Positions 31,805 through 61,289 of a stretch of DNA of 64,000 nt are shown piece after piece. Made by a program: the position numbers and the translations under genes. The stretch is from Hyaloraphidium curvatum SAG 235-1 (lineage: Eukaryota > Fungi > Monoblepharomycota), in the NCBI GenBank assembly GCA_025558095.1, contig JAIVFI010000021.1, positions 186,001 through 250,000 on the forward strand. Reading direction: 5' to 3'. Position 1 is the stretch's first letter; every line of letters begins with the position of its first letter. The notes under the pieces were generated by a model that saw only the letters and a program-made list of their open reading frames with translations, searched no databases and was not told the DNA's origin.

Positions 31805-34023
31805 TCAGCTCACGAAACGACGGGTGGGATCCGCTGCCGGCCAGTACATCTTGAGGTCTGGCAGCTCGACGCAGGCATCTGCAGCGCCATTCCCGCCCCG
31901 GGCGGCCCAGCAGCTCAACCCAACAGCTTCCCCCTCGGCGTCGACAACCTCGTGCATCTCGGTTTCCGCAAACATCGACCTCCCCCGGTAATCGTCCTTG
32001 TGGTACGTCTCCCCGATTTTGACCTCGGAGCTGAAGGTGACCGCACGCTGCCTGCCAGACCCCGTCACGGATCGCAGCTTCGAGGCCGAAGGCACCGGCG
32101 ACCCGTCGTACGCCGTCGGTCCCTCGCTTCCGCCCTGCCACAAGTCCGACTCCCGGTCCCCGATCCCGGCCGCCAGCGAGTCGTCGTGGAACACCTTCCC
32201 CGGAAACGCCTGCGCGCGGCGGTCGGGCACCTCGGTCGCGCAGGCCCAGCACCCGCCCTCGGCCGCGTCCCCGTGCGGGCACACCCTCGCCACCACGCGG
32301 GCCATGCGCAGGCCGAGGAGGTCCGTGCGGGAAATGGCTGTCCGCTCCCCATCGAGGAAGGCCGCGATCGTGTCGGCCGTGGCAGCGCAGTGCGGCATCC
32401 CCGAGGCGCGAAGCACCGCGACGCACGCAGAAACATCGTCCAGCAGGGATGCGCAGCGCTCGAGGTCGGCGCTCGATTGGGCGCCGCTGCGGCAGGCGTG
32501 CCGGAGTTCGAGCAGGCGGATCCACGAGCCGTGCGTCGCGGCGATGCAGAAGATGATCGTGTACACACTCCCCTTGATCTGCTCCGGGGTTGAGCTGCGC
32601 AGGAAAGTGCGTATCCCCGTGCAAACCGCGTCCGCGGCCCGCGTGGCCGTCGCGTAGTTAGTCGAGGAGAACCAAACGCTCAGCTGCAGCGCGTTAAGGG
32701 CGCTCTCAACCGTGTCCGGGTCGCTTTCCGTGTTCGTCACCAAGGCGCTGCTCATCACCGACGATCCACTGTCCTCGGAATGCCTCTCGGGATGAGAGTG
32801 TTCGTACTCGACCTCCTCTGCGAGGTCGACGAAAGGCTCGGGCGAGACGCCGAGCATCCGGAGCATCTGCATGTGTGTGAGGAACCCGAGCGCCTCGTGC
32901 AGCCTGAAACCCTCCCCGAACATCGCTCGGAGTCCCGCCAGGTCCCCAGCACGGAACGGAGCGGCGACCGTGCGCGGCACCGCCGCCTCGAGCCCCGCCA
33001 TGGCCTCCCGCAGGCGCGCCATCCTGTGCACTGCGCGCTTTGCCAGGCCCCTCGTCGGCGCGGGCATTCGCCCCGCACACTCGGCCGCGAGCACCTCCGT
33101 CGTCGACATGCCGGCCTCCGCGGCGCACCACCTCGCCTGGCGGCCGTGCTCGAGGCCGGCAATGTGCACGAGCAGCTCGAGGTGCGGAACGCCGGTGTCG
33201 GGCAGGCCTCCGACCATCTGACGGAGCATGTCGTAGCCGTCGGGCGTGTCGAAGGAGTCCATCCAGCGGAAGGCGTCCGCGCAGGTGAATGGCAGGATGA
33301 GTTCGAGAGTGTGCTTGGGGATAGGGCCGTTCTGCCTGCTCAGGGCGGGACTTGGGAGATTGCGGTGATGGCACCCAACGGGCACCGTGGGGAATTCGAT
33401 GGACGGGTCCAGGAGGGGTTCCGTCCTTGTTTGCGAGGCGAGGACGCTGCGTGACGGGAGGGACGGGCCTGGTCAGGAGAGAACCGTGCCCGCAATTCAC
33501 GTCGCTGTACCCACAGCATGAAGCTGACGCCGACCCAGAACAGATCGAGCCACAATAACCAGACCAGGAGGTCGTCCACGGTCTCGAGCCGCGGCGGGGT
33601 CACGCCCCCCTCGCCCGGCACGCGGTCCCGGCGCCAGAGGCTCACCAGGACGCCCAGCAGGTTCCGCGAGGCGCCCGGCCGTGCCATCGTGGTCTCCACA
33701 AAAACGAGGGCGAGCACCACGGCGAGCTGCAGCGCCAGGGCGTCCTCGGTGTGGCCGGTGGCCAGTCGCGCGAGGCCGCGGCGGACTTCCTCGTCGAACA
33801 GCTCCTCGAGCACCGCCTTCTCGGGCGCCCCGAGCGTGAGGGCTCCCAGCCACCGCGCGGCTGCGACGACGGGGGCCGAGTTGTAGATTCTGTGGAAGGG
33901 CGAGCTGTCCGGGCCGTGCGGCGAGGCGCGTGCGGCCGCGAACAGCTCGGCACGTAGCAGCCGGCGGACGGGCGCCACCGCCGCCACAAAGGCCTCCTCG
34001 AAGGCAGCTGCTTTCGCAGGCAT
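31805..34023 (-). CDS. Family A copy A1: headless fungal-TF MHR-like protein with CPHG..CWAC motif and PP1-docking-like tail
   Basis: Exon 1 MPAKAAAFEEAF...FML, intron 33447-33514, exon 2 to stop 31805; near-identical to A6 (59084-61289). Confidence 0.8.
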
Positions 34024-34448
34024 TGCTCCGGTCTTGGCGACGTGAAGCCGGTTAGGGACAGATTCGATTGGGCGGGTGGGGGTCCCGAGGGAGATCGTGG
34101 AGACCGTGGTCTGGACAACCGGCGGCAATCACTTTTTCAGGGCAGTCCGGGTGGTTCCCGATTCCCGACACACCAATTTTTCCCATCGAACCGGTCCATA
34201 CCGCATCGCGGGGCACCGGCAACGCAGATCGTTGCCCGGGCGCCTTCGGAGAGCTAGGTGTCGCATCGTCACCCTGGTCCCGCCGGAAGCTTTCATTGAC
34301 ACCGGCACCTACGGTTCCCGCCGCCTGGACTCTTCTCTTTGGCCCCAACGGAGTCCGACCTTCGGAAACCGTGCGCAAACACCCTGAAACAAGCTCTGAC
34401 TCCCAGAATCTCGGGTTGCTTTGCCATCTCGTCACCCCCCACCGGCCG

Positions 34449-34918
34449 ATGACCGCCTCGCAGCCGGCGCAGTCCGACCGCCGCGCGCAGGCGTTTCCGG
34501 GGAAGGTGACCGCCGCGCGCAGGCGTTTCCGGGGAAGGTGTTCCACGACGACTCGCTGGCGGCCGGGATCGGGGACCGGGAGTCGGACTTGTGGCAGGGC
34601 GGGAGCGAGGGACCGACGGCGTACGACGGGTCGCCAGTGCCTTCGGTCTCGGAGCTGCGATCGGTGACGGGGTCTGGCAGGCCGCGCGCGGTAACCTTCA
34701 GCTCCGAGGTCAAAATCGGGGAGACGTACCACAAGGACGATTACCGAGGGAGGTCGATGTTTGCGGAAACTGAGGTGCGAGACGGCTTTGATGCCGTCGA
34801 CAGCGGCTTCGGGTGCACAAATCTTGCGGCGTCGCCTCTGGGCCGCAGGGATGCAGATACCTGCGGCCTCCCGGACCTTAGACCTTTCTGGTCTGACTTC
34901 GGATCTGCTTTGGTGTAA
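34449..34918 (+). pseudogene. Chimeric C::A gene (first 9 codons of a family C gene fused to the C-terminal tail of A3), frameshifted by a 32-bp tandem duplication
   Basis: ATG ACC GCC TCG CAG CCG GCG CAG TCC matches the C2 start (MTAQQPPQS); from 34478 it matches the A1 tail DRRAQAFPGKV...RAVTFSSEV...LPDLRPFW; duplicate units 34476-34507 and 34508-34539. Confidence 0.8.
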
Positions 34919-35450
34919 GCTTTCGCCGGTACCCCGTGCGCTGTGGTGGCGGGAGCGGGGCTCGGCAGCGGGCTGCACTCGAGGATCGGCGGACCGAAGA
35001 GTGCCGCGTCGGCATGCGGCACCGGCACCGGCCCCGGCGGGGGGAACATGGGCGCCGCCAGGCGCTCGGCGAGGCACGGGGTCGGGTCGTGCGCCGGGCG
35101 GCCCGGGATAGTGCGGGGCGGCGGCGAAGGTGACGGGTACGGCCCGAGGAGGGGCTCTGGTGCGTTGTATGTGCCCGGTGGATCGGATGGATGCAGCGCG
35201 AGGACGGGTCAGTTCCGACTGCCACGGGGTGGGCGGCACGCAGACACGCACCCCAGAAGTCCGCCGCGCCAAATGGAAGCAGCCAGCCTGCGCCGTCCCG
35301 CGTCCATGCGCCGGCGGCAAACGGGTCGGCGGCGCCGTCGGCGGAGGGCGACTCGCCGCCCGTGGCCAGCATCGGGCCGTCGCGCCGCACGGGCGGCAGG
35401 CCGCACTCGGAAGGGTCAGGGGGCTTCGGCTGCGTGGTAACAGGTGGCAT
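34919..35450 (-). pseudogene. Family B copy B0: N-terminal part of the bZIP gene, truncated before the bZIP domain
   Basis: PDPSECGLPPVRRDG..GAADFWG matches B2 exon 1 YDPTEWGLHPVRRGG..NAADAWG with the same GTGCGT donor; LGPYPS..LAAPMFP matches B2 exon 2; no basic region follows. Confidence 0.65.
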
Positions 35451-36588
35451 CGTTGGGCGGCCCGGACGGCGCCGGGGGCCGTGAGCTGCTCGAACAGGGT
35501 CGGGATCCGGAAGCAAAGCTGACAATGAAAGCTACCGACCGGATGGCATGGGCGAGGAACACTGAGCTATCTCAAGGTCGTCAGACAGTAATGCGAGGAT
35601 CGGGTATCCAGCGATGCGGTGTTCGTTGCTCTGTTGAGCCATCGTGGAGCGGGAGTGGCGGGAACCACCCAATACGAAGACTCATAAGGGGAAAAGAAGT
35701 TTCCAAGGAGTTTCGGGGGGCCTTGGCGCCATATTCGTTGATGGAATGAGGTCACAATGCAGGTCCGAAACATGAGACCGTGTCTCCAGACCGTGGTAAG
35801 ACCTGGCGTCGGAGACGACGTTGTGGGTTCACGAGCCCGAATCCCGGCGCCGCCGAGCACGCGGCGGCCACAGCGAGACAGCCTTGCCGCGGCGCTGTTG
35901 GAAGCAAGCGAGGCAAAGCGAGAGCTTCGGCCGCCCGATGGCATTCGCACACGGTTCCGGGAATCGCGCGGTGGCGGGGTCCAGACTCTGGGGATTCCAT
36001 GCCGAGGGCAGGCGGCGAGGGACGATAGCGATCGGATGGAGCCAACGATACGGCAGCTGGGTATCCGAAGAAGACCGATAGAAGTCCGCCGGCTCCGGCG
36101 TCCCGGGATGCGCTAGCAGTGGCCGCTCTGTCGGAGCGGCGGTGCCCCGATTCACCCCCGCGGCCCGAACCCGAAAACAGTTTGGGTCTTGCCCACACCT
36201 GGAGGTCGTCAGGGCTCTACATCGCGTGGCACGTTGGGCTGCGGGCACAGCCGTGTGCTGCCGCCCGGGAGGAAAGCAAAAGGGATGGCGATGTGATCGG
36301 GTCATGGTTGATTGCCAGTTTCATCGGCGTTTCATCGGCGCCCGTAGCAGCATGCGGCCGGAACTGAATAGGATTCGACCGCAGAACTAGCTGCTGATTT
36401 GATTTCGACCCCGAATCCCCTTTGCCTTGGCTTTGGTCGCCGTCTACTGCCGCTCCTGGCGGCCGGATCGCAGCCCGCGATCTCTCGGTGCATGTGCGCG
36501 AGTCCAGACCCAGGCTCCCCGACCGCAACCCACCGAGGGGTGCGTTCAGGTCTGTTGCACTGCCGTCACTCGGACTACTCTGCCGGCG

Positions 36589-38702
36589 ATGATGGCCGCC
36601 GCGGCGTTCGAGGCGGCTTTTGTGGCCGCGCTGGCGCCGGTGCGCCGGCTGCTCCGCGCGGACGAGTTCGCTGCCGCCCGCGGCTCCCCGCCGGGGCCGG
36701 AAAGCTCGCCCTTCCACCCCATATACAACTCGCCACCCGTCGTGGCTGCCGCTCGATGGCTGGGTGCCCTCGCGCTCAAGGCACCGGAGACGGAGGCGCT
36801 CGAGGCCCTGTTTGACGAGGCTGTCCGGGACGGCCTTGCGGCACCCGCCGCGGGACACACCGAGGACGCGCTGGCGCTGCAGCTCGCCGTCGTGTTCGCG
36901 CTCGTCTTTGTGGAGTCCACCACAGCCCGGCCCGGTGCGTCCCGTAACCTGTTGGCGGTGCTGGTGGCCCTGTGGCGGCGCGACCGGGTGCCTGGCGAGG
37001 CCCGGACGCCGCCACAGCAGCTGGAGACCGTGGACGACCTCCTGCTTTGGCTGCTTTGGCTCGACTTGTTTTGGGTCGGCATCGGATTCCTGCTGTGAGT
37101 GTACTGCGCAGGCGTCTCTGACTTCACGGGACATACAATGAGTTTAACGTCTCCGCATCCAGCGCTCTCGCTTCGCAGACGAGGACGGAGCCGATGCTGG
37201 ACCCGGCCGTTGAGTTCCCTACGGTACCGGTCGGATGCCACCATCGCGACCTGCCCAGGCGTGGGGTGCGCCGGCAGGACGGCCCGATTCCGCAGAGCAC
37301 CCTGGACCTCATCCTGCCCTTTACCTGCGCCGACGTCTTTCGCTGGACTGACGCCTTCGACGAGCCCGCAACCTCGGAAATGCTGCGCCGCATGGTCGGC
37401 AGCCTGCCCCGCGCAGGCTTCGCGCATTTTGAGATGCTCCTCCACGTCGCCAGCCTCGAAAACGTGCGCCTCGCAGCATGGTGCGCGGAGGAGGCGGGTA
37501 TGTCGGCGCTAGACGTGCTGGCCGCCGGATGCGCCGCACGCGGAGCCCCGGGGCAAGGGAGGGGGCTGGCCGGCCGCGCCGTGCAGAGAATGTGGCGCTT
37601 CCACGGGGCCATGGCCAGACTAGCGGCGGAAGTGCCCCCTCCCGTGACGGCGGCGTTCGCGGCTGGAGATGCCGCGGCATTGCGGGCCATTTTGGGGGAC
37701 GGCCGCGGGCCCGAGAAGGCTATATCCTTCCTCACGTACCTGGAAATGCAACGGATGCTCGGCGTGGCGCCTGAGCCGTTTGTGGGCCTCGGCACGGACA
37801 ACGTCGGGGCATCTGACGGACCGGAAGACGACATTTCCTCCGTGGGGAGTGGCTACAACGACTTGGACCTGAACGGTGGCGCCCACCAGGACCTCAAGTT
37901 GGAGGTCTGGTTCGCGTCTGCCCTGAGCAGGACAGCAGCACGTGCCGCCGACTCCATCTGCACGGGGATCCGCTCCTTCCTGCGCGGGCAAACCCCGGAG
38001 ATGGTCGGTAAAAACCTGTACACGATCATCTTCTGCATCGCCGCGACCCACGCCGCGTGGATACGCCTCCTCGAGCTGCGGCACATCTGGCGGCATGGCC
38101 GGCGGCTGTACTTCTCCCTCACGGATCGCAGCTCGAAGCTGCTCGCCGACGTTTCGCTGTGCATCACTCTCCTCCGAGTCTCGGAAATCCCGCACTGCGC
38201 CGGCACTGCGGACATGATCACCGCTTTCCTAGATGGCGAACGGACCGCACTGTCGCGCACGGATCTGCTCGGCCTGCGCATGGCCCGGACGGTGGAGGGG
38301 CGTTGCACCCATGGTGGGGACGCTGCGGATGGCGGGGTCTGCTGGCAGTGTGCGACCGACACCCCCGGTCCTGGACCGCAGAGCTTTGGGGGGGAAGTGT
38401 TTCCGGAGGACACGCTGGCGAACGGCGCCGCGCCGGACTCGTGGTCGTTTGGGAGCTTCGACGGCATCACCTTGGCGGAGGAGAGCTTTCCGGCGGGCTC
38501 GGGTTCGGACCGGGGAACGCTCGCTGAAGGTAGTTCTTGGTTCACCGCGAATGTCGACTTGGTTGAGGCCTCGGGCGGAGGGAACGACGGTGGGCAGGCG
38601 AGAACCAGCAGCATGGAGGCCGTCCTTCGGCCCAGTGTGAAAGAGCTCCCAGACCTCAGGATGTATTGGCCCGTGAGGCACAGCTTGGGAGCCCGTGTTT
38701 AG
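36589..38702 (+). CDS. Family A copy A2 (diverged; keeps CTHG..CWQC and terminal LPDLRMYWP but lacks the RAVTF motif)
   Basis: Exon 1 AAAFEAAFVAALAPVRRLL..., intron 37095-37162 at the conserved position, exon 2 open to 38702. Confidence 0.8.
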
Positions 38703-38865
38703 GCCGCCGCCACGCATTCCTTGTCAGCAGCCGCAAAGAGCACAAATAAATGCTTCGGCGGCGCCCAGCTGGAACGCCCCAAGATCCGGGTCTCGGCTCC
38801 GCGCAACTACCACAGCTCCCACGAGGCAACGCATCTCATCTTTGCCTCAACGGAGAGGTTTAGAG

Positions 38866-39213
38866 CTATTCCATGTTGGCCTTGAGCATCGAGGTCCCAT
38901 CGACCTCGTAGTCGTCCGAGCCGCAGTCCGAATCCGAATCGTCACCGGCGCTGCGTGCCAGGTAAGCAATTGAGCACGGCCTGCACGGCGCGCCGCGGGC
39001 CACGCCGTGCGCGCATGTAGCGAAGCCGTGTCCGCAGCGGTGCGGTTCGGGGAACAGCCCTGCGAGAGGCGTGCGGGCGGCGTCTGCACCATTGCGGATG
39101 CGCGGGGGAAGCGTCTTCGCGGCGAGGGTGAGCAAGTTCACGTCGGCCGCCTGCGAGGGGCCACCAATGGGGAGCGACATAATCGCCGCGAGGGCGGCGG
39201 CGCGAGAGGCAAC
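38866..39213 (-). pseudogene. Family C copy C1 body, decapitated by an inversion
   Basis: AAALAAIMSLP..TLPPRIRNGADAARTPLAGLFP..CAHGVARGAPCRPCS..DDSDSD matches C2 (57470-57994); its start codon is now at 34449. Confidence 0.78.
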
Positions 39214-40618
39214 TCGGGCACCTCGGTCGCGCAGGCCCAGCACCCGCCCTCGGCCGCGTCCCCGTGCGGGCACACCCTCGTCACTATGCGGGCCATGCGC
39301 AGGCCGAGGAGGTCCGTGCGGGAAATGGCTGTCCGCTCCCCATCGAGGAAGGCCGCGATCGTGTCGGCCGTGGCAGCGCAGTGCGGCATCCCCGAGGCGC
39401 GAAGCACCGCGACGCACGCAGAAACATCGTCCAGCAGGGATGCGCAGCGCTCGAGTTTGGCGCTCGATTGGGCGCCGCGGCGGCACGCGTGCCGGAGTTC
39501 GAGCAGGCGGATCCATGAGCCGTGCGTCGCGGCGATGCAGAAGATGATGGTGTACACACTCCTCTTGATCTGATCCGGGGTTGAGCTGCGCAGGAAAGTG
39601 CGTATCCCCGTGCAAACGGCGTCCGCGGCTCGCGCGGCCGTCGCGTAGTTAGTCGAGGAGAACCAAACGCTCAGCTGCAGCGAGTTGGATATGCTCTCGA
39701 CCGTATCCAGGTCGCTTTGGGTGTTCGTCACCAGGGCGCTGCTCATCATTGACGATCCATCGTCCTCGGAATGCCTCTCGGGTTGGAAGTATTCGGACTC
39801 GACCTCCTCTGCGAGGTCCACGAAAGGTTCGGGCGAGACGCTGAGCATCCTCACCAGATGCACGTTCGTGAGGAACCCCAGCGCCTCGTGCAGCCCAAAT
39901 TCCTCCCCGAACATCACCCGCAGTCCCGCCAGGTCCCCGGCAAGGAACGGAGTGGCGACCCTGCGCGGCACCGCCGCCTCGTGCCCCGCCATGGCCTCCT
40001 TCAGGGTCCAGGAGGGGTTCTGTCCTTGTTGGCGAGGCGAGGATGCTGCGTGACGGGGGGGGTCCGGGTCAGGGAGAGAGCCGCGGCTGCGATGCACATC
40101 GCTGTACGTACAGCATGAACTGATGCCGATCCAGAACAGATCGAGCCACAACAGCCAGACCAGGAGGTCGTCCACAGTTTCGAGCCGCGGCGGGGCCACG
40201 CCCGCCTCGCCGGGCACCCGGACCCTGCGCCAGAGGCTCACCAGGACGCCCAGCAGGTTCCGCGAGGCGCCCGGCCGGGCCATCGTAGCCTCGACAAAGA
40301 CAAGGGCGGGCACAACAGCGAGTTGTAGCGCCAGGGCATCCTCGGTGTGGCCGGCGGCGGGGCGGGAAAGTCCGCGCCGGATTTCGTCGTCGAACAGCTC
40401 CTCGAGCACCTCGGTCTCGGGCGCCCCGAGCGCCCTGGCGCCCAGCTATCGCGCCGCCGCGACGACGGGCGCCGAGTTGTGTATCCTGTGGAAGGGTGAG
40501 CTTTCCGGCCCCTGCGGCGAGGCGCGCGCGGCCGCGAACTCCTCGGCGCGATAAGCCTGCTCAACGGAGCCAACGACGCCACAAAGGCAGCTTCGAAGCC
40601 GGCGGCGGTCGTGCTCAT
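39214..40618 (-). pseudogene. Family A copy A3 (frameshift, nonsense codon, internal deletion, tail moved by inversion)
   Basis: 1-nt frameshift ~40550; TGG>TAG at 40446-40448; ~390-bp deletion at ~40004 relative to A6; homology stops at ATEVP/39214. Confidence 0.82.
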
Positions 40619-41628: not shown

Positions 41629-43737
41629 CTACGCCCCCTCCCCGTCCCCGTCCTCGTCCGCCGCCTCCCCCGCCATCAGCACCACCTCCCTCCCCATCTC
41701 CACCTCCCGCCCCGCCGCCAGCCCCTCCAGCGCCTCCGCGGCCTCGGCGGCCCCCGGCCACCCGCTGGCCCTCAGCACCCCGATGCACGCCGCGAACTCC
41801 TCCTCCGGCCCGCCGGCCCCCCTGCGCAGGAGCAGCGCGTGGAACGCCGCGGCGTGCGAGGCGGCGGAGCACACCGAGGGGAGCTGCAGGTCGCGCGCGT
41901 GCTCCGCGCGGGAGAACCGGGAGAGCAGCGCGCGCATGGTCGCCGAGACGCGGAGCGCGCGGTCGGTGGCGGCGGAAAAGGCGGGGAGGGCGGACCACGC
42001 GGCGAGGACGGCCGGGGGGGCGTGGAGGGCGAGCTGGTCCGGGGGGCCGGGGGAGTTGAGCAGCATCCCCGCGAGGCGCACGGAGGCGAGGTGCGCGAGG
42101 AGGCGGTGCTTTTGCATGGAGTCGAACGAGGCGGGGAGGGGGCAGGCGAGGGGGTCCGGGGCGAGGAGGGGGGCGGAGAGCGCGGATTCGTGGGCGGCGA
42201 GGGCACCGCGGAGGAAGAGCAGGCGTGAGACGGCGGCGGGGAGGTGCGGGTGCGAGAGCAGGCGGGCCGCGTCGGCCTCGGAGATGCCCGCGGCGCGGAG
42301 CGGCAACGGCACCGAAGAAGCGGTGGCGCCCAGCGAGAGCAGGTGCTCGCCCACGAGCACATCCAGCGGGCTCAGGGACGCCGACTCGGAGGCCCACTTC
42401 CAGAAGGCGTGGACCTGCGAGAGGAGGTAGCACGCCAGGCTGGGCATGAAGGTCGTGCGGCTGCGGTCCAGGTCCGCGACGCATCGCGCGAGCACGGCGG
42501 TACGGGCCCCGGGAGGGAAAGACGGGCCGTCCTTGGGGTCCATCCAGACAAAGAATTCGCGCGCGCGGAAGGGCGGCGCCTGCGCCAGCAGTTCCGCCAT
42601 CGGCGGGTCCCCCGCGCGCGGTGACGGCATCACCGAGTGGAACGCCTCGTCCGTGGCCGGCAGCGGCACGTCCGGAAAGTGCAGCACGTCGAACGACGGC
42701 GGTGTTTCGGAGCCCGCGGCCAGCGTGAGCTCGAAGGTCGCGGCGACCCAGAACAGGCGCACCCAGTGCTCGCGCCGGAGCCAGTCCTGCGGGGTGAGGT
42801 TGAATGCACCGCCGCCGCGCCCGCCGCCCTCGATTCCCGTGTGCTCCCACATGCGCGCCACGTGCGCCAGCGTGTGCCTTGCGGTGACCACCTGGCCCAT
42901 GGGCCAGAAGGCGAGGATGGCGCAGACGGTGAGAGAGAGCATCAGCGCGAGGTTCTCTGGCGTCCGCAGGCGCTCGCCCGTGACTGCACCGGTGGACACG
43001 ATGGCGTCGGCGGCCTCGGCCCAGAAGCGCCCGAGGCCCTCGGCGATGCGGCGCTGCACCCGCCGCTGCAGCGCCCGCACTGTGCCGTTCAGGTCGTGCG
43101 CGTGGCTGTAGCTGCCCACGAAGGTGCCGGGGTAGATGCCCGCCCGGACCAGTCTGGCGCCGATCCAGCACAGGGCGTCCATGAGCAGCGGGTCTGCGTG
43201 CGTGCGGGCGAACCAGCCGTCCGCGGGCGCCGAGCCGGGGCCGGACCCGCGCAGGAAGAAGGCACGGAAGGCCGGTGGGTGGAATGGGGCGGCCGAATGG
43301 CGGGGCACCAGGTCGGAGAAGGCGCGCACGAAGAGGAGGCGGGCGTCAGCGGTGAGCCGCGGGTCGTCTGCGGCGGGCGGCAGCGGGCGCGGCGGCGCCG
43401 GGACGAGCGGGAGCGGCTGCGCGGGGAGCCCGAGCTTGGCGGCGAGGTCGGCGGCGAGCGCGGCGTCGAAGTGCAGCCCGAAGAGCGCGGCGTCGGCGTC
43501 GCCGTCGGAGCTCCACGCGGGCGGCGTGCCGGGCGAGTCCGAGAGGCGGCCGCGCAGCAGCGGCGGCCCCGCCGCGACCCGCCGCGCGAGCGACGCCTCC
43601 GCCGCGCCCGCCGCACCCCCGCCGGCCGCCTCCCGCGCCACGCGCGCCCCGCACCGGCCGCAGCCCGGCGTGCCCACCGCGACGGCCGCCCAGCACAGCG
43701 AGCACACCTCCGGCGGCCGCCCCGTCGCCGCGGGCAT
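41629..43737 (-). CDS. Fungal transcription factor-like protein (MHR/Fungal_trans-like domain) with N-terminal CxxC..CxxC; distant full-length relative of family A
   Basis: WLRREHWVRLFWVAATFELTLAAGSETPPSFD..FPDVPLP (MHR-like); CSLC..CGRC near the N-terminus; C-terminal ACIGVLRASGWP matches family A ACVAVLRASGMP. Confidence 0.7.
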   Translation of the reverse strand: MPAATGRPPEVCSLCWAAVAVGTPGCGRCGARVAREAAGGGAAGAAEASLARRVAAGPPLLRGRLSDSPGTPPAWSSDGDADAALFGLHFDAALAADLAAKLGLPAQPLPLVPAPPRPLPPAADDPRLTADARLLFVRAFSDLVPRHSAAPFHPPAFRAFFLRGSGPGSAPADGWFARTHADPLLMDALCWIGARLVRAGIYPGTFVGSYSHAHDLNGTVRALQRRVQRRIAEGLGRFWAEAADAIVSTGAVTGERLRTPENLALMLSLTVCAILAFWPMGQVVTARHTLAHVARMWEHTGIEGGGRGGGAFNLTPQDWLRREHWVRLFWVAATFELTLAAGSETPPSFDVLHFPDVPLPATDEAFHSVMPSPRAGDPPMAELLAQAPPFRAREFFVWMDPKDGPSFPPGARTAVLARCVADLDRSRTTFMPSLACYLLSQVHAFWKWASESASLSPLDVLVGEHLLSLGATASSVPLPLRAAGISEADAARLLSHPHLPAAVSRLLFLRGALAAHESALSAPLLAPDPLACPLPASFDSMQKHRLLAHLASVRLAGMLLNSPGPPDQLALHAPPAVLAAWSALPAFSAATDRALRVSATMRALLSRFSRAEHARDLQLPSVCSAASHAAAFHALLLRRGAGGPEEEFAACIGVLRASGWPGAAEAAEALEGLAAGREVEMGREVVLMAGEAADEDGDGEGA

Positions 43738-43954
43738 CGGGTGGCGGTCGAGTTCTTCTGCGCGCGGCGAGAACAGAGAGTGCCCGCCGCACTTGCCACT
43801 CCGCCACCTCGATGCCCCCACTCTGCAGCGTAGGCCATTCATCGTGGCCAGCTCCGACAAATCGGATCGGCAAGCCTGTGCCGCGTCGGTTGCATCCGAC
43901 AGGCGGGCGCTCACCGACGTGTCTCCCGAAGGCTCTTGGATGGGTCGTCTCGTT

Positions 43955-44320
43955 GACGCGGGCCATCGTGGTCTCGACGTACACCAGTGCGAGCACGACG
44001 GCGAGTTGCAGCGCCAGGGCGTCCTCGGTGTGGCCGTTGGCGGGGAGCGAGAGGCCGCGGCGGACTTCCTCGTCGAACGCCGTTTCGAGTGCCGCCGCCT
44101 CGGGCGCCCCGAGCGCGAGGGCACCCAGCCACCGCGCTGCCGCGAGAACGGGCGCAGAGGTGTAGATTCTGAGGAAAGGAGAGCTTTCCGGCCCGTGCGG
44201 CGAGGCGCGCGCAGTGAAGAGCGCCTCGGGCGGGAGGAGCCGGCGCACCGGTGCCAGCGCAAGCGCGAATGCGTCTTCAAAGGCAGCTTCGGCCTCGGTG
44301 GATGTCGCTCTGTCGGGCAT
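43955..44320 (-). pseudogene. Family A copy A4, 5' fragment only
   Basis: MPDRATSTEAEAAFEDAFALALAPVRRLL...YVETTMAR matches A5; homology ends ~43955. Confidence 0.8.
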
Positions 44321-45507: not shown

Positions 45508-45986
45508 CTGACCGTCCGGGAGCCCCGGGCGGAGGTACAATCCGGAGGCGGGGAGGACCACCAAAGATCTTCTTGGTCGCCTTAGTCCATGTGTTCCGCA
45601 ATATGGCAAAGTGTTCAGTGGTGGCCACCCTCACCATTCGAACAACCCGGGGGCTTCGGTGCGGTGCGGAAGAGCGGATTGAACTACTTGCTCACCCGAT
45701 GCCTTTCACGGCGTCGCTTGCTCATATCTGGTGAGCAACACCATATGGTCAGGCACTTCCTAGCTTGCCACTCTGACGACGACCCAGAAGATTGTCCATC
45801 TACTGTAAGCTCTCCCTCGGATCCGTGTCCTGGCGCGGGAGCTCCGCACATTCGCATACACACGGTGAATCGTATGTTCCCGAGCCCTTAAACGTTGTAG
45901 CTCCAATATTCCAGGAAGTCCACCGCCGTGTCCGCGGTAGGGCCCAAGCGGCCGTTGTGTTTAGTTGTTTGGGCGCGCTGTTCGCG

Positions 45987-47246: not shown

Positions 47247-48890
47247 ATGTCGGACGCGTCCTTGGCCTCGCTGCCGACCGAGATCCTCGATGCCGTGCTC
47301 GCCCGGCTCGTTCTCTCCTCCTCTTCCGCATTTCCGGACGCGTCGCAGTGGGACGTGCGGTCCGCGGCGCGTCTGGCTGCCTCCAACCGCGCGTGGTTCT
47401 CCGCGGTTCGGGCGCGCCTGGACGCGCTGCTGCCGCTGTGGGCGCCCGGGCTCGCCGCTTCTTTTGCCGAACACTGCGTGGAACGCGACTATGCGGTCGG
47501 ACGGAGGGCGTGGGCGGCGATGCGCCGGGGGACGCATTCGGCCACAGCGGAGGACGCGCCCGGGGCCGACCACGACATCCCGGCCCCGCAATACTCGCTC
47601 TCGCTGCTCGTGCGCTTCGCCGTCGCCACGCGTTTCCGCGTGCGGTGGGCCGAGCTCTCCCTCGAGGCCTTCCTGCTCCCTTCCTTCCACCCGCCGCGGC
47701 AGGCCGACCCGCACCGCGCGCCAACGCTAGCCATGCAGCTGGTCAGGGCGCTGGTCACCGCCCTGCCGCTCCTCCCCCGACCGGCGTTGCACACGGACAC
47801 GTACCAGCCTCCCATCTGGACGCGGGCTCCCTGGGAAGAGGCCGCTCGAGAGGACGAGTTTGCCGCCCTGGATGCCCTCGGAACACCAGTGGACAGCCGC
47901 CCGCAGTGGGACGCGTGCATCATCGTCGAGTGGCCCCTGCGCTTCTGCGTACCGGAAGGGATTGGCGGCGACTCGCACGCGAGCGACATATCTCTGCTCG
48001 CCGTCGTCGGCATTTCTGGCCGCGTCCGGCTCGCCAACTCGTGGCGCACCCTGCCGCACGCCTGGCTCTCCTTCCCCCCGGACCCGGAACACCCGGACCG
48101 CCTCCCCTCGGGGACTTTGGACGCCGCGCGCCGCCTCGCGGCGCCCCTCCTGGACCCGTTTGCGCGGGGCGACCTCGACGCCTCCTTCCTACCCCGGGTG
48201 CACAAGGCCTTCCGCCCGCGGCTCACCGAATACCCCGACCCGTCATACCAGGTCTTCAGGCTCAACTGCTTCCCAGCCGCGGGCGCGGAAGCGCTGCTCT
48301 TTGCCCTCGAGGAATCCGCGCGCCTGGTCGCCCTCTCGCTCCTCTCTCACCTGATCGCAGATGCCGCATCCCGCCTCGCCGCGCGCTTCCCCCTCCCGTC
48401 TTCGGTGCTCATCCGCTCCGCCGACTCGTTCCCCTCGCCTTCCCCCTCCCGCAAACCCAGCGCGCGCCCGCACCCCGCCCTCTCCCGCGCCCTGCGCCGC
48501 GTGCTCCCCGCCCTCGTCCTCACCCCCCCGCTCTCCGCCCTCCTCGCGTCCCCGCCGTACCTCTCCGCGCGCACCCGCCGCACCGCGCTCGCACTCTCCG
48601 CGCTCTCGCGCGCGCAGCATCCCCCGGAGGAAGGCTGGCCGGAGCGGTTGTGCCCGCGGGACGGCGATCCGGGGGAGGTGCGCAGGCGCTTCCACGGGTT
48701 CCTCTCCTCGCTGCATTCCCCGGGGGGCCCCGGGGTGGGGACAGCCGAGTGGCCGCTGTTCCTCCTGGACCGCGCCGCGGGCGTTGTTGAGGACGCGGAG
48801 GCGCAATTGGGCGAGGCACTGCGCGCCGCCATGCATGGGCAGGACGGCAGCGGGCTCGTGCACGTGCTGGAGCGGATGCGCGTATATTGA
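47247..48890 (+). CDS. F-box-like protein
   Basis: 547-aa ATG ORF starting SLASLPTEILDAVLARL...VRSAARLAASNRAW. Confidence 0.65.
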   Translation: MSDASLASLPTEILDAVLARLVLSSSSAFPDASQWDVRSAARLAASNRAWFSAVRARLDALLPLWAPGLAASFAEHCVERDYAVGRRAWAAMRRGTHSATAEDAPGADHDIPAPQYSLSLLVRFAVATRFRVRWAELSLEAFLLPSFHPPRQADPHRAPTLAMQLVRALVTALPLLPRPALHTDTYQPPIWTRAPWEEAAREDEFAALDALGTPVDSRPQWDACIIVEWPLRFCVPEGIGGDSHASDISLLAVVGISGRVRLANSWRTLPHAWLSFPPDPEHPDRLPSGTLDAARRLAAPLLDPFARGDLDASFLPRVHKAFRPRLTEYPDPSYQVFRLNCFPAAGAEALLFALEESARLVALSLLSHLIADAASRLAARFPLPSSVLIRSADSFPSPSPSRKPSARPHPALSRALRRVLPALVLTPPLSALLASPPYLSARTRRTALALSALSRAQHPPEEGWPERLCPRDGDPGEVRRRFHGFLSSLHSPGGPGVGTAEWPLFLLDRAAGVVEDAEAQLGEALRAAMHGQDGSGLVHVLERMRVY

Positions 48891-49217: not shown

Positions 49218-49982
49218 TCAGCTGACGTTCAGGGTCCCGTCCGACTGCCCCGCGTTGGTGCCGGACGAACCCGGGTGGCTGGCGCGGTAGGACTGCCTCC
49301 CCCTGGGGAAGTGCGACGGGTACCTGTACCTCACGGTCGCAACGCCCTGGTGGTTGGTGGTCGCGCTCCCGGCCCCGGCGCCGCGCACGGTGAAGTTGAT
49401 CCGCACGTTCCGCGCGGCCTGATTGTTGTCCGCCCGCCTGACGGTGGCCCGGAGGGTGACCTGCTGGCCTCTGCGCACGGAGGCGTGGGTGACGGTGATG
49501 TAGAGGTCGACCTTGCGGGAGCATCCGGAGCGGGAGGGGCAGGTTCCGAGGTTGCGAGCGCTCAGCTGCCAGTGCCCGCCTTCCCTGCGGCTGGAGCACG
49601 ACGCGAAGAGCACGCATTCGCCGCCGGCGGCGTCGTTGCCCTGGAACGCGATGTGCGTGCATCGGCCGTCGTCATCGCAGTAGGTCTCGCACTCCCGGTG
49701 CGTCGCCACAGAGAAGCGCCCCAGGGGTTCGCCGCAGCACTGGGAACCGTAGCGGCAGTACTCGTACTGCAGGGGGTCGAGAATCTCGGTGCAGTCGCCA
49801 AGCACGCCGGTGCCTTCGTAGCCGGAGTTGCAGGAGCAGTACTCGCTTCCGTAGTGGTACACGCACTGCGCGTTGATGTCGCACTGCGTGCCCAGAGGCC
49901 CGCAGGGAAATTGGGCGTTCGCGCTTGAGCAGGCCAAGGTCAACGCGGCCAAGATAAGGAGGGGGAGTGTGCGGACGGACAT
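49218..49982 (-). CDS. Secreted EGF-like + PAN/Apple-like + bacterial Ig-like (Big) domain protein
   Basis: Signal peptide; CDINAQC..YCSCNSGYEGTG..C (EGF); ECETYCDDDGRCTHIAF..ECVLFASC (PAN); GQQVTLRATV..INFTV..GSATTNHQGVATVRY..YRASHPG (Big-like); intronless. Confidence 0.75.
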   Translation of the reverse strand: MSVRTLPLLILAALTLACSSANAQFPCGPLGTQCDINAQCVYHYGSEYCSCNSGYEGTGVLGDCTEILDPLQYEYCRYGSQCCGEPLGRFSVATHRECETYCDDDGRCTHIAFQGNDAAGGECVLFASCSSRREGGHWQLSARNLGTCPSRSGCSRKVDLYITVTHASVRRGQQVTLRATVRRADNNQAARNVRINFTVRGAGAGSATTNHQGVATVRYRYPSHFPRGRQSYRASHPGSSGTNAGQSDGTLNVS

Positions 49983-50862
49983 CTGGCGAGGCGGCACACG
50001 GTCAGACGTTGCAGGTCGAGGCGTCCCATACTCCCCGCCGTGAGCCCCGAGTCTCTGGCTCCACGGAAACGGATCGAAGCTTTCCCACCTTGAAATTTCG
50101 TCTGTGCGTCGCGGGATCGGACGGGGCTGGAGCCTTGACGTGGCGCGAGGCTGCGGTGGGCGCGGCGTCGGGCGTGAACGGGCGCTCCGTGAAGCCCAAT
50201 AACCGATGGTAGGGGGCAGCGAGACGGCGGGCCCGATGCGTTGGAGCAGCGCAACGGCACAGCGCAACGGCAGCAGCTCCGTGACTGACTGACTCTCTGA
50301 CGGACTTTTCCAAACAACGATCTTTAACTTGCAACACCTGAGATGGCGAAAGGAGGACCGAAATCGAGCTGTGCAGTCTACGGACTATCTCCTGGGAAGG
50401 TACGGGGCCGGCCCATGCATGTCCAACGGCGGACCCTGTGTCGGTCGGTCCGTCAGGTTACCGGCACCAGCCGCCGCTCCCGGGGAAAGCGTACTCGCGG
50501 ATCTTGCGATTTGGCGATGGCCGTCGGGGACGGGGACTGGCAAGCGACCGGAGAGATAAGCCACGGTCCCATCTTCCGGCCCCTTTGCTCTGCGCGATAC
50601 CGAAAGGCCGAAAGGAACTCACCCCGAAAGCAGTCAATGACCGATCGACGGATCGGTGCCGTTGCACTTCGCGTCGATCAATCCGAGGGCCTCCGCATCG
50701 CGTATCGCGATCGGAACCACCCAGTCACGGTGTCGCCTTGGGGCACGCTGCACTCCGGAAATACCAACGGGCCCCAGGACGGCCGAGCTTGCTCGGGGAA
50801 CGGAGCAGCTCCGTCTGTACTGAACCGCTGCGCAACACCGCTCCCCCTCCCTCGACGTCCAA

Positions 50863-52766: not shown

Positions 52767-53568
52767 TCACGGTGAGGCGGCCACCATCGCGGCAAGCATG
52801 TCTGCGTGCACCCTCAGCTCGCTGTTCTCGGCCTCGAGTTCGGCCACCCTGAGTCCCAGCGCCTCCTTGTAATCGCTCCGCCTGTCGCGGCTGCGGCGCG
52901 CGGCGGCGGTGTTGCGAGAGCGTTTCTTTAGGATGTCCGCAACGCACTGCTTGCGCTGTGCTGGGGAGAGCTTCGCGGGGCGCAGCGAAAAGAGGCGTGA
53001 AGCTGCGTGGGCGAGCACCTTCGGGGCAATAGTGGAGGCGTCGCCGGCCGGAGTCGGGCGCGGTGGCCGGCAGAGCGCCGGAGCCGGCGGGGCAGAGACG
53101 GTGGCGTCGGCCAGCGGGCTCAGAGGCATCAGCGGCGCCTGGAACATAGGGGCGGCGAGGCGCGCCGCAAGGGGCGGTGGCCGGAACTGGGCCAGGTCGT
53201 GCGCGGGCAAAGGCGGTGCGGGCAGGGAGGTCCGCGGCGGCGACAGCAGCGACGGGTACGGGCCGGTGAGGGGCACGGGTGCATCTGGGTGCATGTTCGA
53301 CGACGCAGGACGGAGGAGCTGGCGGTCAGAACTCTTACTGCGGGGCTAGTGGCCTTCGCGGCGCACGCATGCACGCACCCCACGCGTCGGCCGCGTTCCA
53401 AAGCAGCTCCAAGCCGGCGTCGTTCGGTGACACGGCGTCGCCAGCAAGCAGGTCGGCGAGCAAGTTGGCAAACAAGGGGTACTCGTCGGGCTCGCCCGCG
53501 ACCAGCGGCTGGCCTCCGCGGCGGACCGGGTGCAGGCCCCACTCTGTCGGGTCATAAGGCTCTTTCAT
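52767..53568 (-). CDS. Family B copy B2: intact bZIP transcription factor
   Basis: Exon 1 MKEPYDPTEWGLHPVRRGG..., probable intron 53285-53378, then KKRSRNTAAARRSRDRRSDYKEALGLRVAELEAENSELRVHADML. Confidence 0.82.
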
Positions 53569-54650: not shown

Positions 54651-56560
54651 ATGCCCGACAGCGCGACAACCACCGAGGCCGAAGCTGCCTCCGCAGGCGC
54701 ATTCGCGCTTGCGCTGGCGCCGGTGCGCCGGCTGCTCCCGCCCGAGGCGTTCTCGGCCGCGCGTGCCCGCCCGCACGGGCCGGAAAGCTCGCCTTTCCAC
54801 AGAATCTACACCTCTGCGCCCGTCCTCGCGGTGGCGCGGTGGCTGGGCGCCCTCGCGCTCGGGGCGCCCGAGGCCGGGGCGCTCGAGGTGGCGTTCGACG
54901 AGGAAATCCGCCGCGGCCTTTCCCGCCCCTCCACCGGCCACACTGAGGACGCCCTGGCGCTGCAGCTGGCTGTCGTGCTTGCACTGGTGTACGTCGAGAC
55001 CACGATGGCCCGGCCGGCCGCGTCAAGGAACCTGCTGGCGGTCCTTGTGGACCTCTGGCGGCGCGACCGCGTGCCGGGCGAGGCAGGGGTGCCACTACCG
55101 CAGCTGCAGACTGTGGACAACCTCCTCATCTGGCTGCTGTGGCTGGACGTGTTCTGGGTCGGTGTCAGCTTTCTACTGTGGGTTCTAAATCTTGAGCGCC
55201 AATTTGCCGATTTTTTTGACCAGGCTTTCCCACTGACTACAGCGTGTTCGCATGGCACACAAAGACTGAACCCATTGTTGACCCTGCCATCGAATTCTCC
55301 ACCGTGCCAGTAGGATCCGCCCACTGCGGCCTCCCCCGGCCAGCCCTGCATCGCCAGGGCGGCCCGATTCCCCAGAACACCGTCGACCTCATCTTGCCCT
55401 ACACATGCGCCGACGTCTTCCGCTGGATGGAAGACTTCGACCATCCCGGCGGCTTGGAAATGCTGCGCCGCATGATTGGGGGCTTACCTGACGCCGGCTT
55501 CCTGCATCTCGAGCTGCTCCTGCAAGTCGCCGGACTTGAACAGGGCCGCCAGGCGAAGTGGTGTGCCGAGCAGGCAGGCATGTCGACGACCGAGGTTCTC
55601 GCCGCCGAGTGCGCAGGTGGCATCCCCGGGCCGGCGAGGGGCCTGGCCAGACACGCCGTCAAGAGGATGGTGCGCCTGAGGGAAGCCATGGCGGCGCTCG
55701 AGGCTGTGGTGCCACGCAGTATCGCCTTTGCGTTCCTTGCCGGGGACCTCGAGAAGCTATGCGCCATGCTCAATGACCACGCCGAGCTGCACGAGGCACT
55801 TTCGTTCCTCACCATCATGCAAGTGCTCAAGATGCTCGGGGTCGCGCCCGAGCCGTTCGTGGACCTCGCGGAGGAGGTAGTGACTGCGCTATACTCCGAG
55901 ACACCTTTGCCGGACAACGCATCCTCCGTTACGAGCAGAGACAGCGACGTTGATACCGCCACCAGCAGATCAAACACCCTGAAGCTCAGTGTCTGGTTCT
56001 CCTCGGCCAACTACACGACGGCAGCTAGCGCCGCGGATGCCGTTTGCACGGGGATCCGCAGTTTCTTGCGCAGCTCGACCCCGGAGCAGATTAAGAGCAG
56101 CGTGTACGCCACCACCTTCTGCATCGCGGCCACGCACGCCGCGTGGATCCGGCTGCTCGAGTTGCGGCACCTCTGCCGCAGCGGCCCGCAGTCAAGTGCA
56201 GACTTTGGGCGTTGCACTGCTTTGCTGGGCGACGTCTCGGTCTGCACCGCAGTACTGCGCGCTTCGGGGATCCCGCGCTGCGCCGGCATCGCCGACATGG
56301 TCGCCGGCTTCCTAGACGGCCAGCGCACCGCCATTTCCCGCACGGACCTCCTCGGCCTTCGCATGGCCCGCGTCGTCACCAGGGTGTGCCCGCACGGGGA
56401 TGCGGCCGAGGGCGGATGCTGGGCGTGCGCGACCGAGGTGCCTGATAACAGCCCCCAGGTGTTCCCGGGCAGGGTGTTCTTCGACGACGCGCTGGCGGCC
56501 GGTATCGGACGCCGAGAACCGGACTCGTGTCAGGGCAGGAGCGAAGGGCCGAATGTGTAG
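54651..56560 (+). CDS. Family A copy A5 (stops early; the ancestral tail survives as a degenerate out-of-frame remnant to ~56800)
   Basis: Intron 55178-55242 at the conserved position; CPHG..CWAC retained; downstream VEVGETQQRKEDDRATSVFAE and ELPDLRM remnants. Confidence 0.8.
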
Positions 56561-57469
56561 CCGGCAAACCGGCCTCGGAGCTGTGTGTCTCGGGGTCGGC
56601 ATGATCACAGTCACCTCCGTGGTCGAGGTCGGCGAGACGCAACAAAGAAAGGAGGACGATCGGGCGACGTCTGTGTTTGCCGAGAATGCGCGCGGGGGCA
56701 TGGATGAAGGACAAGAGTCCTTGAACCCGAGCAGCTTAGCAGCGACGGGTGGTGAAGGAGCTGCACAGAGCTACCGGACCTTCGGATGCAATGTCCCTTA
56801 CCGACCCCCTGTCTTCGTGATGGGATAACTTGGTGGCTTCGGGAGGGAAGGAGGTGGCTTATCGCGCGTGTGTGTGTTTGGGGGGGCGGGGGTTGGTTCT
56901 TGAATCTCTCTAGTTCTCTGAAACGCCGATCACCCGCCTCCGCCTGCCTTCCCCGAGGTCGGATCTACCGCTGCCGTACCCCGCGCCGCCCTTTCGCTGG
57001 ATCGCGCATCTCCAGCACAGTCTCATAGCGGCGCGCGGACCCCAGTCGACTCGTCTTCTGCTCTTGTCAACGTTTTCTCGCGCCTGCCTCCCGTTCCGCC
57101 CCGATCCGTTGTCTCGCACCGACTTGGATCTCTCTGGACGCGGATCTTGGATTATCTTGGGATTTCTCAAGTGAGCAATCGTCAACGTCGACGTCGACCG
57201 GCCGCCCCTCGCCAGAGACCCATAAGGCGTCGGTTCGGAGTTGGCAGACCCCATGCAACTGGGCCTTCGGGCTCAGGGTAATGCAGTGACCTCGAGCACT
57301 GCGGCACTGCTCGCTTTGGGGCGCGTTGTTTTCTTCACGCGCGGGTAGTCGGCAACTTGCGTCGAGTGTCTGGAAGTTTGGAAGCAAATCCGTGGGCGAA
57401 GGTGCAAGTCTCCCAGAATAGAAAGACATCTAGCGTATGCACACGGTGGCGGAAGACCATCGTCTGGTT

Positions 57470-57994
57470 TCAGGCCATATCGGGCCTCGGAGGCGCCGAG
57501 ACGCGAGCCATGATGACCGCGGGGCCTCTTGGCGTCCCAACGCTGCCATCGGAGGCCCCGCCGGGCAGAAGAGGCCCCCGGCCTGGCCCGAGCGTGACAG
57601 AGGAGCCCGACACCACGCTGGCGGACGTGTCCGTCGTCGCCCCGGCCTTGTAGCCGCGCTCGTCGTCGTCCGAGCCATCGTCCGAGTCCGAATCGTCCGC
57701 GTCGCGGTGCGCCGAGTACGCAGCGGAACACGGGGCGCACAGCGCCCCACGGGGCACGCCGTGGATGCACAGCGCTTCACCCTCGCCCCGGCGGTGCGGC
57801 CGGGGGAACAGGCCGGCCAGCGGCGTGCGGCCGACGTCGGCGCCGTTGCGGGTGCGCGGCGGGAGCGTGTGTGCCGCGAGAATGCAGAAGTCTGCGGCGG
57901 CCTCGGAGGGGCGGCCGGCGGGGAGTGAGAAGACGGCGGCGAGGGCGGCGGGGCGCACGGCGGCTGCGGACTGCGGAGGTTGCTGGGCGGTCAT
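57470..57994 (-). CDS. Family C copy C2: small protein with CIHG..CAPC motif and acidic DDSDSDDGSDDDE tract
   Basis: 174-aa ATG ORF; paralog at 34449 + 38866-39213 conserves the protein sequence. Confidence 0.7.
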   Translation of the reverse strand: MTAQQPPQSAAAVRPAALAAVFSLPAGRPSEAAADFCILAAHTLPPRTRNGADVGRTPLAGLFPRPHRRGEGEALCIHGVPRGALCAPCSAAYSAHRDADDSDSDDGSDDDERGYKAGATTDTSASVVSGSSVTLGPGRGPLLPGGASDGSVGTPRGPAVIMARVSAPPRPDMA

Positions 57995-59083: not shown

Positions 59084-61289
59084 ATGCCCGCGAAAGCGGC
59101 CGCCTTCGAGGAGGCCTTTGTGGCGGCGCTGGCGCCCGTCCGCCGGCTGCTATGCGCCGAGCTTTTCGCGGCCGCGCGCGCGTCGCCGCATGGGCCGGAA
59201 AGCTCGCCCTTCCACCGAATCTACAACTCGGGCCCCGTCGTGGCAGCCGCGCGGTGGCTGGGAGCCCTCACGCTCGGGGCGCCCGAGACGGCGGTGCTCG
59301 AGGAGCTGTTCGACGAGGAAGTCCGCCGGGGACTTTCCCGCCCCGCCACCGGTCACACCGAGGACGCCCTGGCGCTGCAGCTCGCCGTGGTGCTCGCCCT
59401 CGTCTTTGTGGAGACCACGATGGCCCGGCCGGGCGCCTCGCGGAACCTGCTGGGCGTCCTAGTGAGCCTCTGGCGCCGCGACCGCGTGCCCGGCGAGGCG
59501 GGCGTTACCCCGCCGCGGCTCGAGACCGTGGACGACCTCCTGGTCTGGCTATTGTGGCTCGATCTGTTCTGGGTCGGCGTCAGCTTCATGCTGTGCGTAC
59601 AGCGACGTGAATTGCGGCCGCGGCTCTCTCCTGACCAGGCCCCACCCGTCACGCAGCGTCCTCGCCTTGCAAACAAGGACGGAACCCCTCCTGGACCCGT
59701 CCATCGAGTTACCCACGGCACCCGTTGGGTGCCATCACCGCGATATCCCAAGTCCCGCACTGATCAGGCAGAACGGCCCTATGCCCCGGCACACTCTCGA
59801 CCTCATCCTGCCGTTCACATGCGCGGACGCCTTCCGCTGGATGGACTCCTTCGACACGGCCGACGGCTCCGACATGCTCCGTCAGATGGTCGGAGGCCTG
59901 CCCGACGCCGGCTTCCCGCACCTCGAGCTGCTCGTGCACATTGCCGGCCTCGAGCACGGCCGCCAGGCGAGGTGGTGCGCCGCGGAGGCCGGCATGTCGA
60001 CGACCGAGGTGCTCGCGGCCGAGTGCGCGGGGCGAATGCCCGGGCCGACGAGGGGCCTGGCAAAGCGCGCAGTGCAGAGGATGGCGCGCCTGCGGGAGGC
60101 CATGGCGGGGCTCGAGGCGGCGGTGCCGCGCACGGTCGCCGCTCCGTTCCGTGCTGGGGACCTGGCGGGACTCCGAGCGATGTTCGGGGAAGGTTTCAGG
60201 CTGCACGAGGCGCTCGGGTTCCTCACACACATGCAGGTGCTCCGAATGCTCGGCGTCTCGCCCGAGCCTTTCGTCGACCTCGCAGAGGAGGTCGAGTACG
60301 AACACTCTCATCCCGAGAGGCATTCCGAGGACAGTGGATCGTCGGTGATGAGCAGCACCTTGGTGACGAACACGGAAAGCGACCCGGACACGGTTGAGAG
60401 CGCCCTTAACGCGCTGCAGCTGAGCGTTTGGTTCTCCTCGACTAACTACGCGACGGCCACGCGGGCCGCGGACGCGGTTTGCACGGGGATACGCACTTTC
60501 CTGCGCAGCTCAACCCCGGAGCAGATCAAGAGGAGTGTGTACACGATCATCTTCTGCATCGCCGCGACGCACGGCTCGTGGATCCGCCTGCTCGAACTCC
60601 GGCACGCCTGCCGCCGCGGCGCCCAATCGAGCGCCGACCTCGAGCGCTGCGCGTCCCTGCTGGACGATGTTTCTGCGTGCGTCGCGGTGCTTCGCGCCTC
60701 GGGGATGCCGCACTGCGCTGCCACGGCCGACACGATCGCGGCCTTCCTCGATGGCGAGCGGACAGCCATTTCCCGCACGGACCTGCTCGGCCTGCGCATG
60801 GCCCGCGCGGTGGCAAGGGTGTGCCCGCACGGGGACGCCTTCGAGGGCGGGTGCTGGGCCTGCGCGACCGAAGTGCCCGACCGCGGTGCGCAGGCGTTCC
60901 CGGGGAAGGTGTTTCCCGACGACTCGCTGGCGGCCGGGATCGGGGACCGGGAGTCGGATCCGTGGCTGGGCAGGAGCGAGGGGACGACGGCGTACGACGG
61001 GTCGCCGGCGGCTTCGGTCTCGAAGCTGCGATCCGTGACGAGGTCTGGCAGGCAGCGTGCGGTCACCTTCAGCTCCGAGGTCAAGATCGGGGAAACGTAC
61101 CGCAAGCACGATTACCGAGGGAGGTCGATGTTTGCGGAAACCGAGATGCACGAGGTCGTCGGCGCCGAGGGGGAGGCTTTTGGGATGAGCTGCTGGGCCG
61201 CCCGGGGCGGGAACGGCGTTGCGGATGCCCGCGTCGAGCTGCCGAATCTCAAGATGTACTGGCCAGCCGCCGACCAAGTCGCTTCGTGA
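59084..61289 (+). CDS. Family A copy A6: intact headless MHR-like protein with CPHG..CWAC and PP1-docking-like tail
   Basis: Exon 1 59084-59592, intron 59593-59656, exon 2 to 61289; RQRAVTFSSEVKIGETYRKHDYRGRS; terminal LPNLKMYWP. Confidence 0.82.

Follow-up and report, generated by a model that had tools for sequence, protein, structure and literature searches.

Fungal transcription factors (TFs) of the zinc-cluster (Zn2Cys6) type carry a middle homology region (MHR, or MHD). In PnPf2 the MHR drives dimerisation and protein contacts, as stated in a preprint (bioRxiv 10.64898/2025.12.09.693112). It was reported that more than 90% of the entries with an MHR and no DNA-binding domain ("MHD-only") are annotation errors, and the existence of true MHD-only proteins, as well as the action of the domain without a head, was stated to be open (PMC10141177). 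For the docking of protein phosphatase 1 (PP1), an RVxF-ΦΦ-R string has been defined (PMC7599070). Here we analysed a window of 64,000 nucleotides, contig C21:186001-250000 of the 31.9-Mb assembly of the early-branching fungus Hyaloraphidium curvatum, which contains repeated genes of three kinds: A (MHR proteins without a DNA-binding head), B (bZIP-type) and C (small proteins with a zinc motif). An earlier, sequence-only reading had interpreted them as the parts of a split TF. We found that the A genes of the window are indeed headless, that most C-terminal tails of the family contain a putative PP1-docking motif, and that the gene pairs of the window are copies of a single cassette.

Headless A proteins and their C-terminal tail

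Neither A nor C had a match in Pfam, and A lacked PF04082. Apart from H. curvatum proteins, word searches returned a single Logan protein. Spliced gene models were searched one exon at a time; how widely A occurs is known from word search only, and all genome-wide counts given here are lower bounds from coordinate-only scans. By these scans the A family has at least 43 further loci in the genome, spread over more than 25 contigs. In a second organism (Logan SRR26194948, GC content about 54%, three contigs read), a family member matched the family profile with an expectation value (E) of 5e-121; this protein carries PF00172 (Zn_clus) at its N-terminus and has no tail. The A-family proteins of the two organisms are only about 30% identical. 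Fold searches were made with a structure model of a homolog on contig C8 (database gene model P0002), which had a predicted local distance difference test score (pLDDT) of 74. Among 48,161 chains, the best match was Cep3, with Z scores of 11.4 and 11.2 over about 355 residues (root-mean-square deviation (rmsd) 5.5-5.8), the top alignment covering 354 residues (Z 11.4, rmsd 5.8); these scores are moderate for helical proteins, and Z 11.4 lies below the safe level for helical folds. Foldseek alone gave no significant match for A, and its second-ranked match, not significant alone, was a CBF3 chain. In a structure atlas, Fungal_trans and Zn_clus clusters matched the A model (template modelling scores of 0.59 and 0.51 by target). 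On this evidence, which is firmer in the sequence than in the fold, A derives from Zn2Cys6 TFs and represents their MHR body, in agreement with the resemblance to that region noted by the sequence-only reading.

Because MHD-only entries are usually annotation errors and an intron can hide a zinc cluster, headlessness was tested directly. Such hiding was seen in the H. curvatum genome itself, where the first Cys codon of two TFs on contig C35 is apparently split by an intron, so that their clusters were missed by the Pfam scan. No Zn2Cys6 half-site was found upstream of any A gene of the window, all intervals between A genes and their partners being covered; the gap between the A1 and C1 starts is only 426 bp, without CxxC. 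RNA contigs were unspliced across the start codons, from 533 nt upstream of the A6 ATG and from 416 nt upstream of the A5 ATG. They contained no upstream exon with a DNA-binding domain for A5 or A6, a finding that would have refuted the sequence-only reading, and its statement that A begins without such a domain was borne out. Genome-wide, a Zn_clus match near the start was found in 0 of 41 tail-bearing genes and in 36 of the 89 ordinary Fungal_trans loci that served as matched control (Fisher p 9e-8, where the family members are not statistically independent and the scan misses intron-split clusters). The sole family locus with a Zn_clus match in the genome has no tail, and an A homolog of the SRR26194948 organism also looked headless within the 560 bp examined. 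We conclude that the window copies have truly lost the head, as about 40 paralogs appear to have done as well.

Two features were missing from the earlier list: a seventh, distant family member (D, Table 1) and a conserved C-terminal tail with a putative zinc site, which most A genes encode. A genes have two exons with a phase-2 intron of 64-68 nt, and in their products the MHR is followed, in order, by C-x-H-x(6-11)-C-x2-C, [KR]-V-x-F, x3-V-x-V and T-[YW]-x3-[ED]-Y-x2-R, often with a terminal LPxL-x2-[YF]W. The RVxF-ΦΦ-R motif was present in 25 of 28 aligned tails (21 with strict RVxF) and in 0 of 5600 shuffles. When the PDB was searched with the tail profile, chains of neurabin-1, spinophilin and CASC5/KNL1 made up five of the top six matches, and the neurabin and spinophilin alignments fell on their RVxF segments. 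The motif region was disordered in the model (pLDDT mostly below 60, no regular structure). The genome contains two clear PP1-type catalytic genes. The motif is kept in A1, A6 and the contig C8 copy, all of which are paired with C; it was lost by different routes from A2 (internal divergence) and A5 (early stop), both of which are bZIP-paired.

Outside the window 67 tail matches were found, of which 37 were attached to an MHR and about 30 had no detected MHR alongside, the weakest of the latter being possibly unrelated RVxF proteins. Local arrays of tail matches without a detected MHR alongside were observed at C36:498000-505300, C25:570000-582500 and C37:511400-512600. Domains are mixed within the family, in which head-only, tail-only and stand-alone-tail forms coexist.

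A duplicated cassette and the linkage of C with the tail

Self-comparison and translation of the window gave six A-like, three B-like and two C-like stretches, as the sequence-only reading had counted, placed and oriented them. The frames of A1, A2, A5 (with a short tail), A6, B2 and C2 are intact; the broken copies are A3, A4, C1 and B1, and B0 lacks a bZIP. The five head-to-head pairs of that reading lie where and as it had described, but only B2/A5 and C2/A6 (two of the five) are intact. It was found that a 4.7-kb inversion (about 34476-39213) had cut both C1 and A3. When the inversion is undone, the order becomes A1-C1-A2-B0, and A6-C2-A5-B2 is its mirror image; A4/B1 repeats part of A5/B2. 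The window pairs are copies of one A-C-A-B cassette, duplicated and partly decayed, and therefore do not represent five independent events, but one A/C origin and one A/B origin. The inversion also fused the 5' end of C1 to the tail of A3, and a 32-bp tandem duplication has put the resulting C::tail chimera out of frame.

The ratio of nonsynonymous to synonymous divergence (dN/dS) was 0.11-0.5 among A paralogs, 0.3-0.56 for the C copies and 0.19-0.26 for B1/B2. In this comparison, which was of paralogs and not of alleles, the genes are under purifying selection, and nothing points to the diversification that a recognition locus would be expected to show. Synonymous divergence (dS) was 0.1-0.2 between A1 and A6, compared with 0.72 between C1 and C2, a difference that gene conversion or a later copy would produce. 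A2 and A5 are 60% identical, with the A/B orientation kept. In exon trees, the base of which was unresolved, the A genes did not group by partner type. RNA contigs from one run cover B2, A5, C2 and A6, which indicates presence only, strand and level being not readable; the A5 intron is spliced in its contig. Between the 3' ends of A5 and C2 (window 57050-57450), contig depth reached about 2300 in one bin with loose ends, possibly from a repeated or abundant element, and no match to it was found in the other loci examined.

The C genes number about 17 in the genome, and all are small, with invariant G-x-D-x3-T and C-x-H..C-x2-C residues. Among 1.84 billion representatives, the sole credible relatives outside H. 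curvatum came from the SRR26194948 organism. The structure model of C was of low confidence (pLDDT 59); the fold search with it was empty (best Z 2.4), and look-ups of C in structure atlases gave nothing usable. Outside the window, 4 of 15 C matches lay within 5 kb of a tail, at three loci (contigs C8, C35 and C2), where 0.33 were expected, and 8 of the 15 lay within 5 kb of some TF gene, in varying orientations. The contig C8 pair is head-to-head like those of the window, with a dS of about 1.4 to the window copies. In the SRR26194948 organism, a head-to-head arrangement with a stand-alone tail gene was found for one C gene out of three; the neighbours of this pair, in a cluster of about 10 kb (contig positions 1-10417), are two zinc-cluster-type TFs, a P450 and a hydrolase. 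These gene neighbourhoods indicate that what recurs, in TF clusters, is a link between C and the tail module rather than one between A and bZIP. The pairing of A with C described by the sequence-only reading recurs outside the window in the contig C8 pair; most A loci are unpaired.

Two other origins of C were considered. Homology to the A tail was supported no further than the zinc motif, to which the profile match was limited (probability 10%). That C is the detached first exon of the TFs beside it on contig C35 was rejected, because these TFs already have an intron-split Zn2Cys6 and the C frame closes with a stop. This locus, C35:130000-140500, contains three C genes, a C fragment, two Zn2Cys6-MHR TFs and an A-family gene. 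At C2:248000-262000, an A-family gene lacking the tail is accompanied by a C gene and by two tail genes that stand alone, one of them having a degenerate RVxF; this layout resembles the C/tail cluster of the SRR26194948 organism. The home of the contig C8 A/C pair, C8:504000-524000, is a lower-GC (55-63%) island of long open reading frames (ORFs), which include a gene for a 1243-amino-acid DUF5906 protein (primase-helicase-like by eye), two F-box genes and a kinesin-like gene; a short repeat lies ahead of several of the ORFs, and the region looks like an endogenous viral or mobile island.

The features of the window are listed in Table 1. A gene for a RINGv (MARCH-type) protein lies directly downstream of A6 (window 61365-62351, +). 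Other neighbours are a two-exon gene at 45987-47068 (+) with a nuclease-like acidic motif, resembling Crinkler or restriction endonuclease proteins by eye and without a Pfam match in exon 1; a 547-amino-acid ORF at 47247-48890 (+) with an F-box-like start by eye and no Pfam match; and a gene at 49218-50000 (-) for a protein with EGF, PAN and Ig-like domains.

Table 1. Positions of A, B, C and D genes and their parts in the window
Feature	Position	Strand	Description
A1	31805-34023	-	Intact headless MHR protein; tail with CxH..CxxC and RVxF-ΦΦ-R; predicted intron 33447-33514
C::tail chimera, left inversion breakpoint	34449-34918	+	First 9 codons of C1 joined to the A3 tail with its putative PP1-docking motif; out of frame through a 32-bp tandem duplication
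B0	34920-35450	-	5' exon and proline-rich part resemble B; bZIP absent from all frames; 3' limit approximate
A2	36589-38702	+	MHR and putative zinc site intact; RVxF motif lost; predicted intron 37095-37162
C1, 3' part	38866-39213	-	Displaced by inversion
A3	39214-40618	-	Broken by a frameshift near 40560 and an internal deletion at 40004/40005; inversion carried its 3' end to 34476-34918
D	41629-43737	-	Distant A-family MHR gene; N-terminal four-Cys head (CxxC-x10-CxxC), no tail
A4	43958-44320	-	5' fragment of about 120 codons, sister of A5
B1	44967-45509	+	bZIP exon; exon 1 and proximal promoter deleted (deletion at 44967)
B2	52767-53568	-	Intact bZIP gene; predicted intron 53285-53378
A5	54651-56560	+	MHR and putative zinc site; stop before the PP1 motif; intron 55178-55242, spliced in RNA contig
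C2	57470-57994	-	Intact, 174 amino acids; NGxDV-x2-T motif, CxH..CxxC (57728-57769), acidic stretch
A6	59084-61289	+	Intact headless MHR protein with tail; predicted intron 59593-59656
A6 putative zinc site, C-x-H-x7-C-x2-C	60822-60863	+	
A6 putative PP1-docking motif, RVxF-ΦΦ-R, neurabin/spinophilin type	61056-61124	+	

Proposed function and alternative explanations

On balance, A is probably a PP1-recruiting co-regulator derived from a zinc-cluster factor, with C as an adaptor or modulator, the PP1 docking being putative. A would bind PP1 through RVxF-ΦΦ-R, and its MHR, which in other fungi serves dimerisation and the sensing of ligands, would bring PP1 to zinc-cluster factors or other substrates; A would then act as a co-regulator rather than as one half of a TF. 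C is a small protein with a zinc motif, its genes being kept alongside tail genes and TF clusters; it would probably serve as an adaptor or modulator of this module, and the bZIP gene was probably captured once in the cassette and then copied along. A wider version, which we regard as tentative, is that headless MHR proteins, stand-alone tail microproteins and C proteins assemble with zinc-cluster TFs and deliver PP1, possibly under the control of an MHR ligand, as a modular regulatory layer; the tail and C have the CxH..CxxC motif in common.

Several observations speak against the co-regulator interpretation, besides the fold scores and the two limits of the Zn_clus comparison given above. 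The PDB matches of the motif were individually weak (E 0.17-0.5), and the PP1 motif is missing from A2 and A5, two of the four intact A copies of the window. A linked partner is lacking for most C genes and most tails, and C is also found beside ordinary TFs, so that the linkage may reflect a clustering of young regulatory genes.

The alternative that survives best, rather unlikely in our estimate, is that the gene order has no function: segmental duplication in TF-rich, rearranging regions would have produced it, A would be functional in PP1 docking, and C and B would be passengers. The mirror-image cassette with its inversion and deletions is consistent with this explanation, as are the frequent and variously oriented proximity of C to TF genes, the narrow profile match between C and the tail, and the finding that about 40 of the 43 outside A loci have neither B nor C as a partner. 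It is less easily reconciled with the head-to-head placing of C and a tail-bearing gene in both organisms, given how far their A-family proteins have diverged, or with the contig C8 C/tail pair at its large dS from the window copies.

The split TF, with A as the sensor, DNA binding provided by the head-to-head bZIP and the two co-expressed from a shared promoter, appears improbable. B2 is an ordinary bZIP (PF00170/PF07716 over cut-off), and the B1 exon has both basic region and zipper. The B2/A5 pair is intact, with contigs for both genes in one RNA run; the A/B orientation persisted through the divergence of A2 and A5, and these B-paired A genes both lost the PP1 motif that the C-paired ones kept. 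A generic bZIP match (C8:810007-810141, +, in a 65-codon frame) precedes an A gene of the same strand by about 0.8 kb, and may be a separate gene or a fused exon. Against the split TF stand the single origin of the A/B pairs, the lack of bZIP in any frame of B0 and the fragmentary state of B1/A4. Outside the window, a B-like bZIP was found within 10 kb of 0 of the 43 A-family loci, 0 of 6 other B-like genes lay within 10 kb of an A gene, and no head-to-head A/bZIP pair was found. In the three SRR26194948 contigs no bZIP was found next to the A, tail and C genes, and the A/B and A/C intergenic regions had no promoter element in common beyond the duplicated segments. Because no A/bZIP pair was found elsewhere, the proposal that B supplies DNA binding is unsupported, and the many A homologs without partners are what the sequence-only reading had itself named as contradicting it.

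In basidiomycetes, the HD1/HD2 mating-type genes form divergently transcribed pairs in several sub-loci. That the window is a comparable mating-type or self/non-self locus, an analogy drawn from its repeated head-to-head pairs and in line with its rearrangement, is very improbable: no homeodomain or NLR-type domain was found among the scanned proteins, most A-family members are unpaired and scattered over the contigs of the genome, and among the paralogs the low dN/dS shows purifying selection and no sign of diversification. A missed head exon, which would make the A proteins ordinary Zn2Cys6 TFs, has the slightest chance of all and is largely refuted for the window copies by the short A1-C1 gap, the unspliced RNA contigs and the Zn_clus comparison described above.

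Comparison with known systems

Zn2Cys6-MHR TFs (GAL4-like, "CeGAL"), of which Cep3 is an example, have the same MHR-like helical body, and the SRR26194948 family member with PF00172 resembles them further; the tailed A proteins differ in having neither a DNA-binding head nor PF04082, and in the additional C-terminal putative zinc site and PP1 motif. MHD-only proteins (PMC10141177) are alike in having an MHR without a DNA-binding domain. Whereas those are mostly annotation errors, the loss is real in the window copies of A and appears to hold for the paralogs. The spacing of the RVxF-ΦΦ-R string in the A tails matches that of neurabin/spinophilin, Phactr and yeast Bni4 (PMC7599070); unlike in the neurabin-type PP1 interactors, the putative docking tail of A is found on a TF-derived body or apparently alone, with no PDZ or RPEL domain and with an unclear W element.

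No description of a headless PP1-docking MHR family was found in a literature search, which was not exhaustive. The A family looks like a real MHD-only case, with about 40 paralogs and a second organism. Domain exchange is seen in progress, as head-only, tail-only and stand-alone-tail forms coexist and the window inversion made a new C::tail fusion.

The nuclear receptors SHP and DAX-1 and the Id proteins have kept a dimerisation or ligand domain, are missing the DNA-binding one, and modulate their full-length kin. The likeness to A is by analogy only, the folds being unrelated and A having apparently gained a phosphatase-docking motif. If the proposed function is correct, the A family would be a fungal counterpart of the nuclear-receptor co-regulators without DNA binding, built on a phosphatase.

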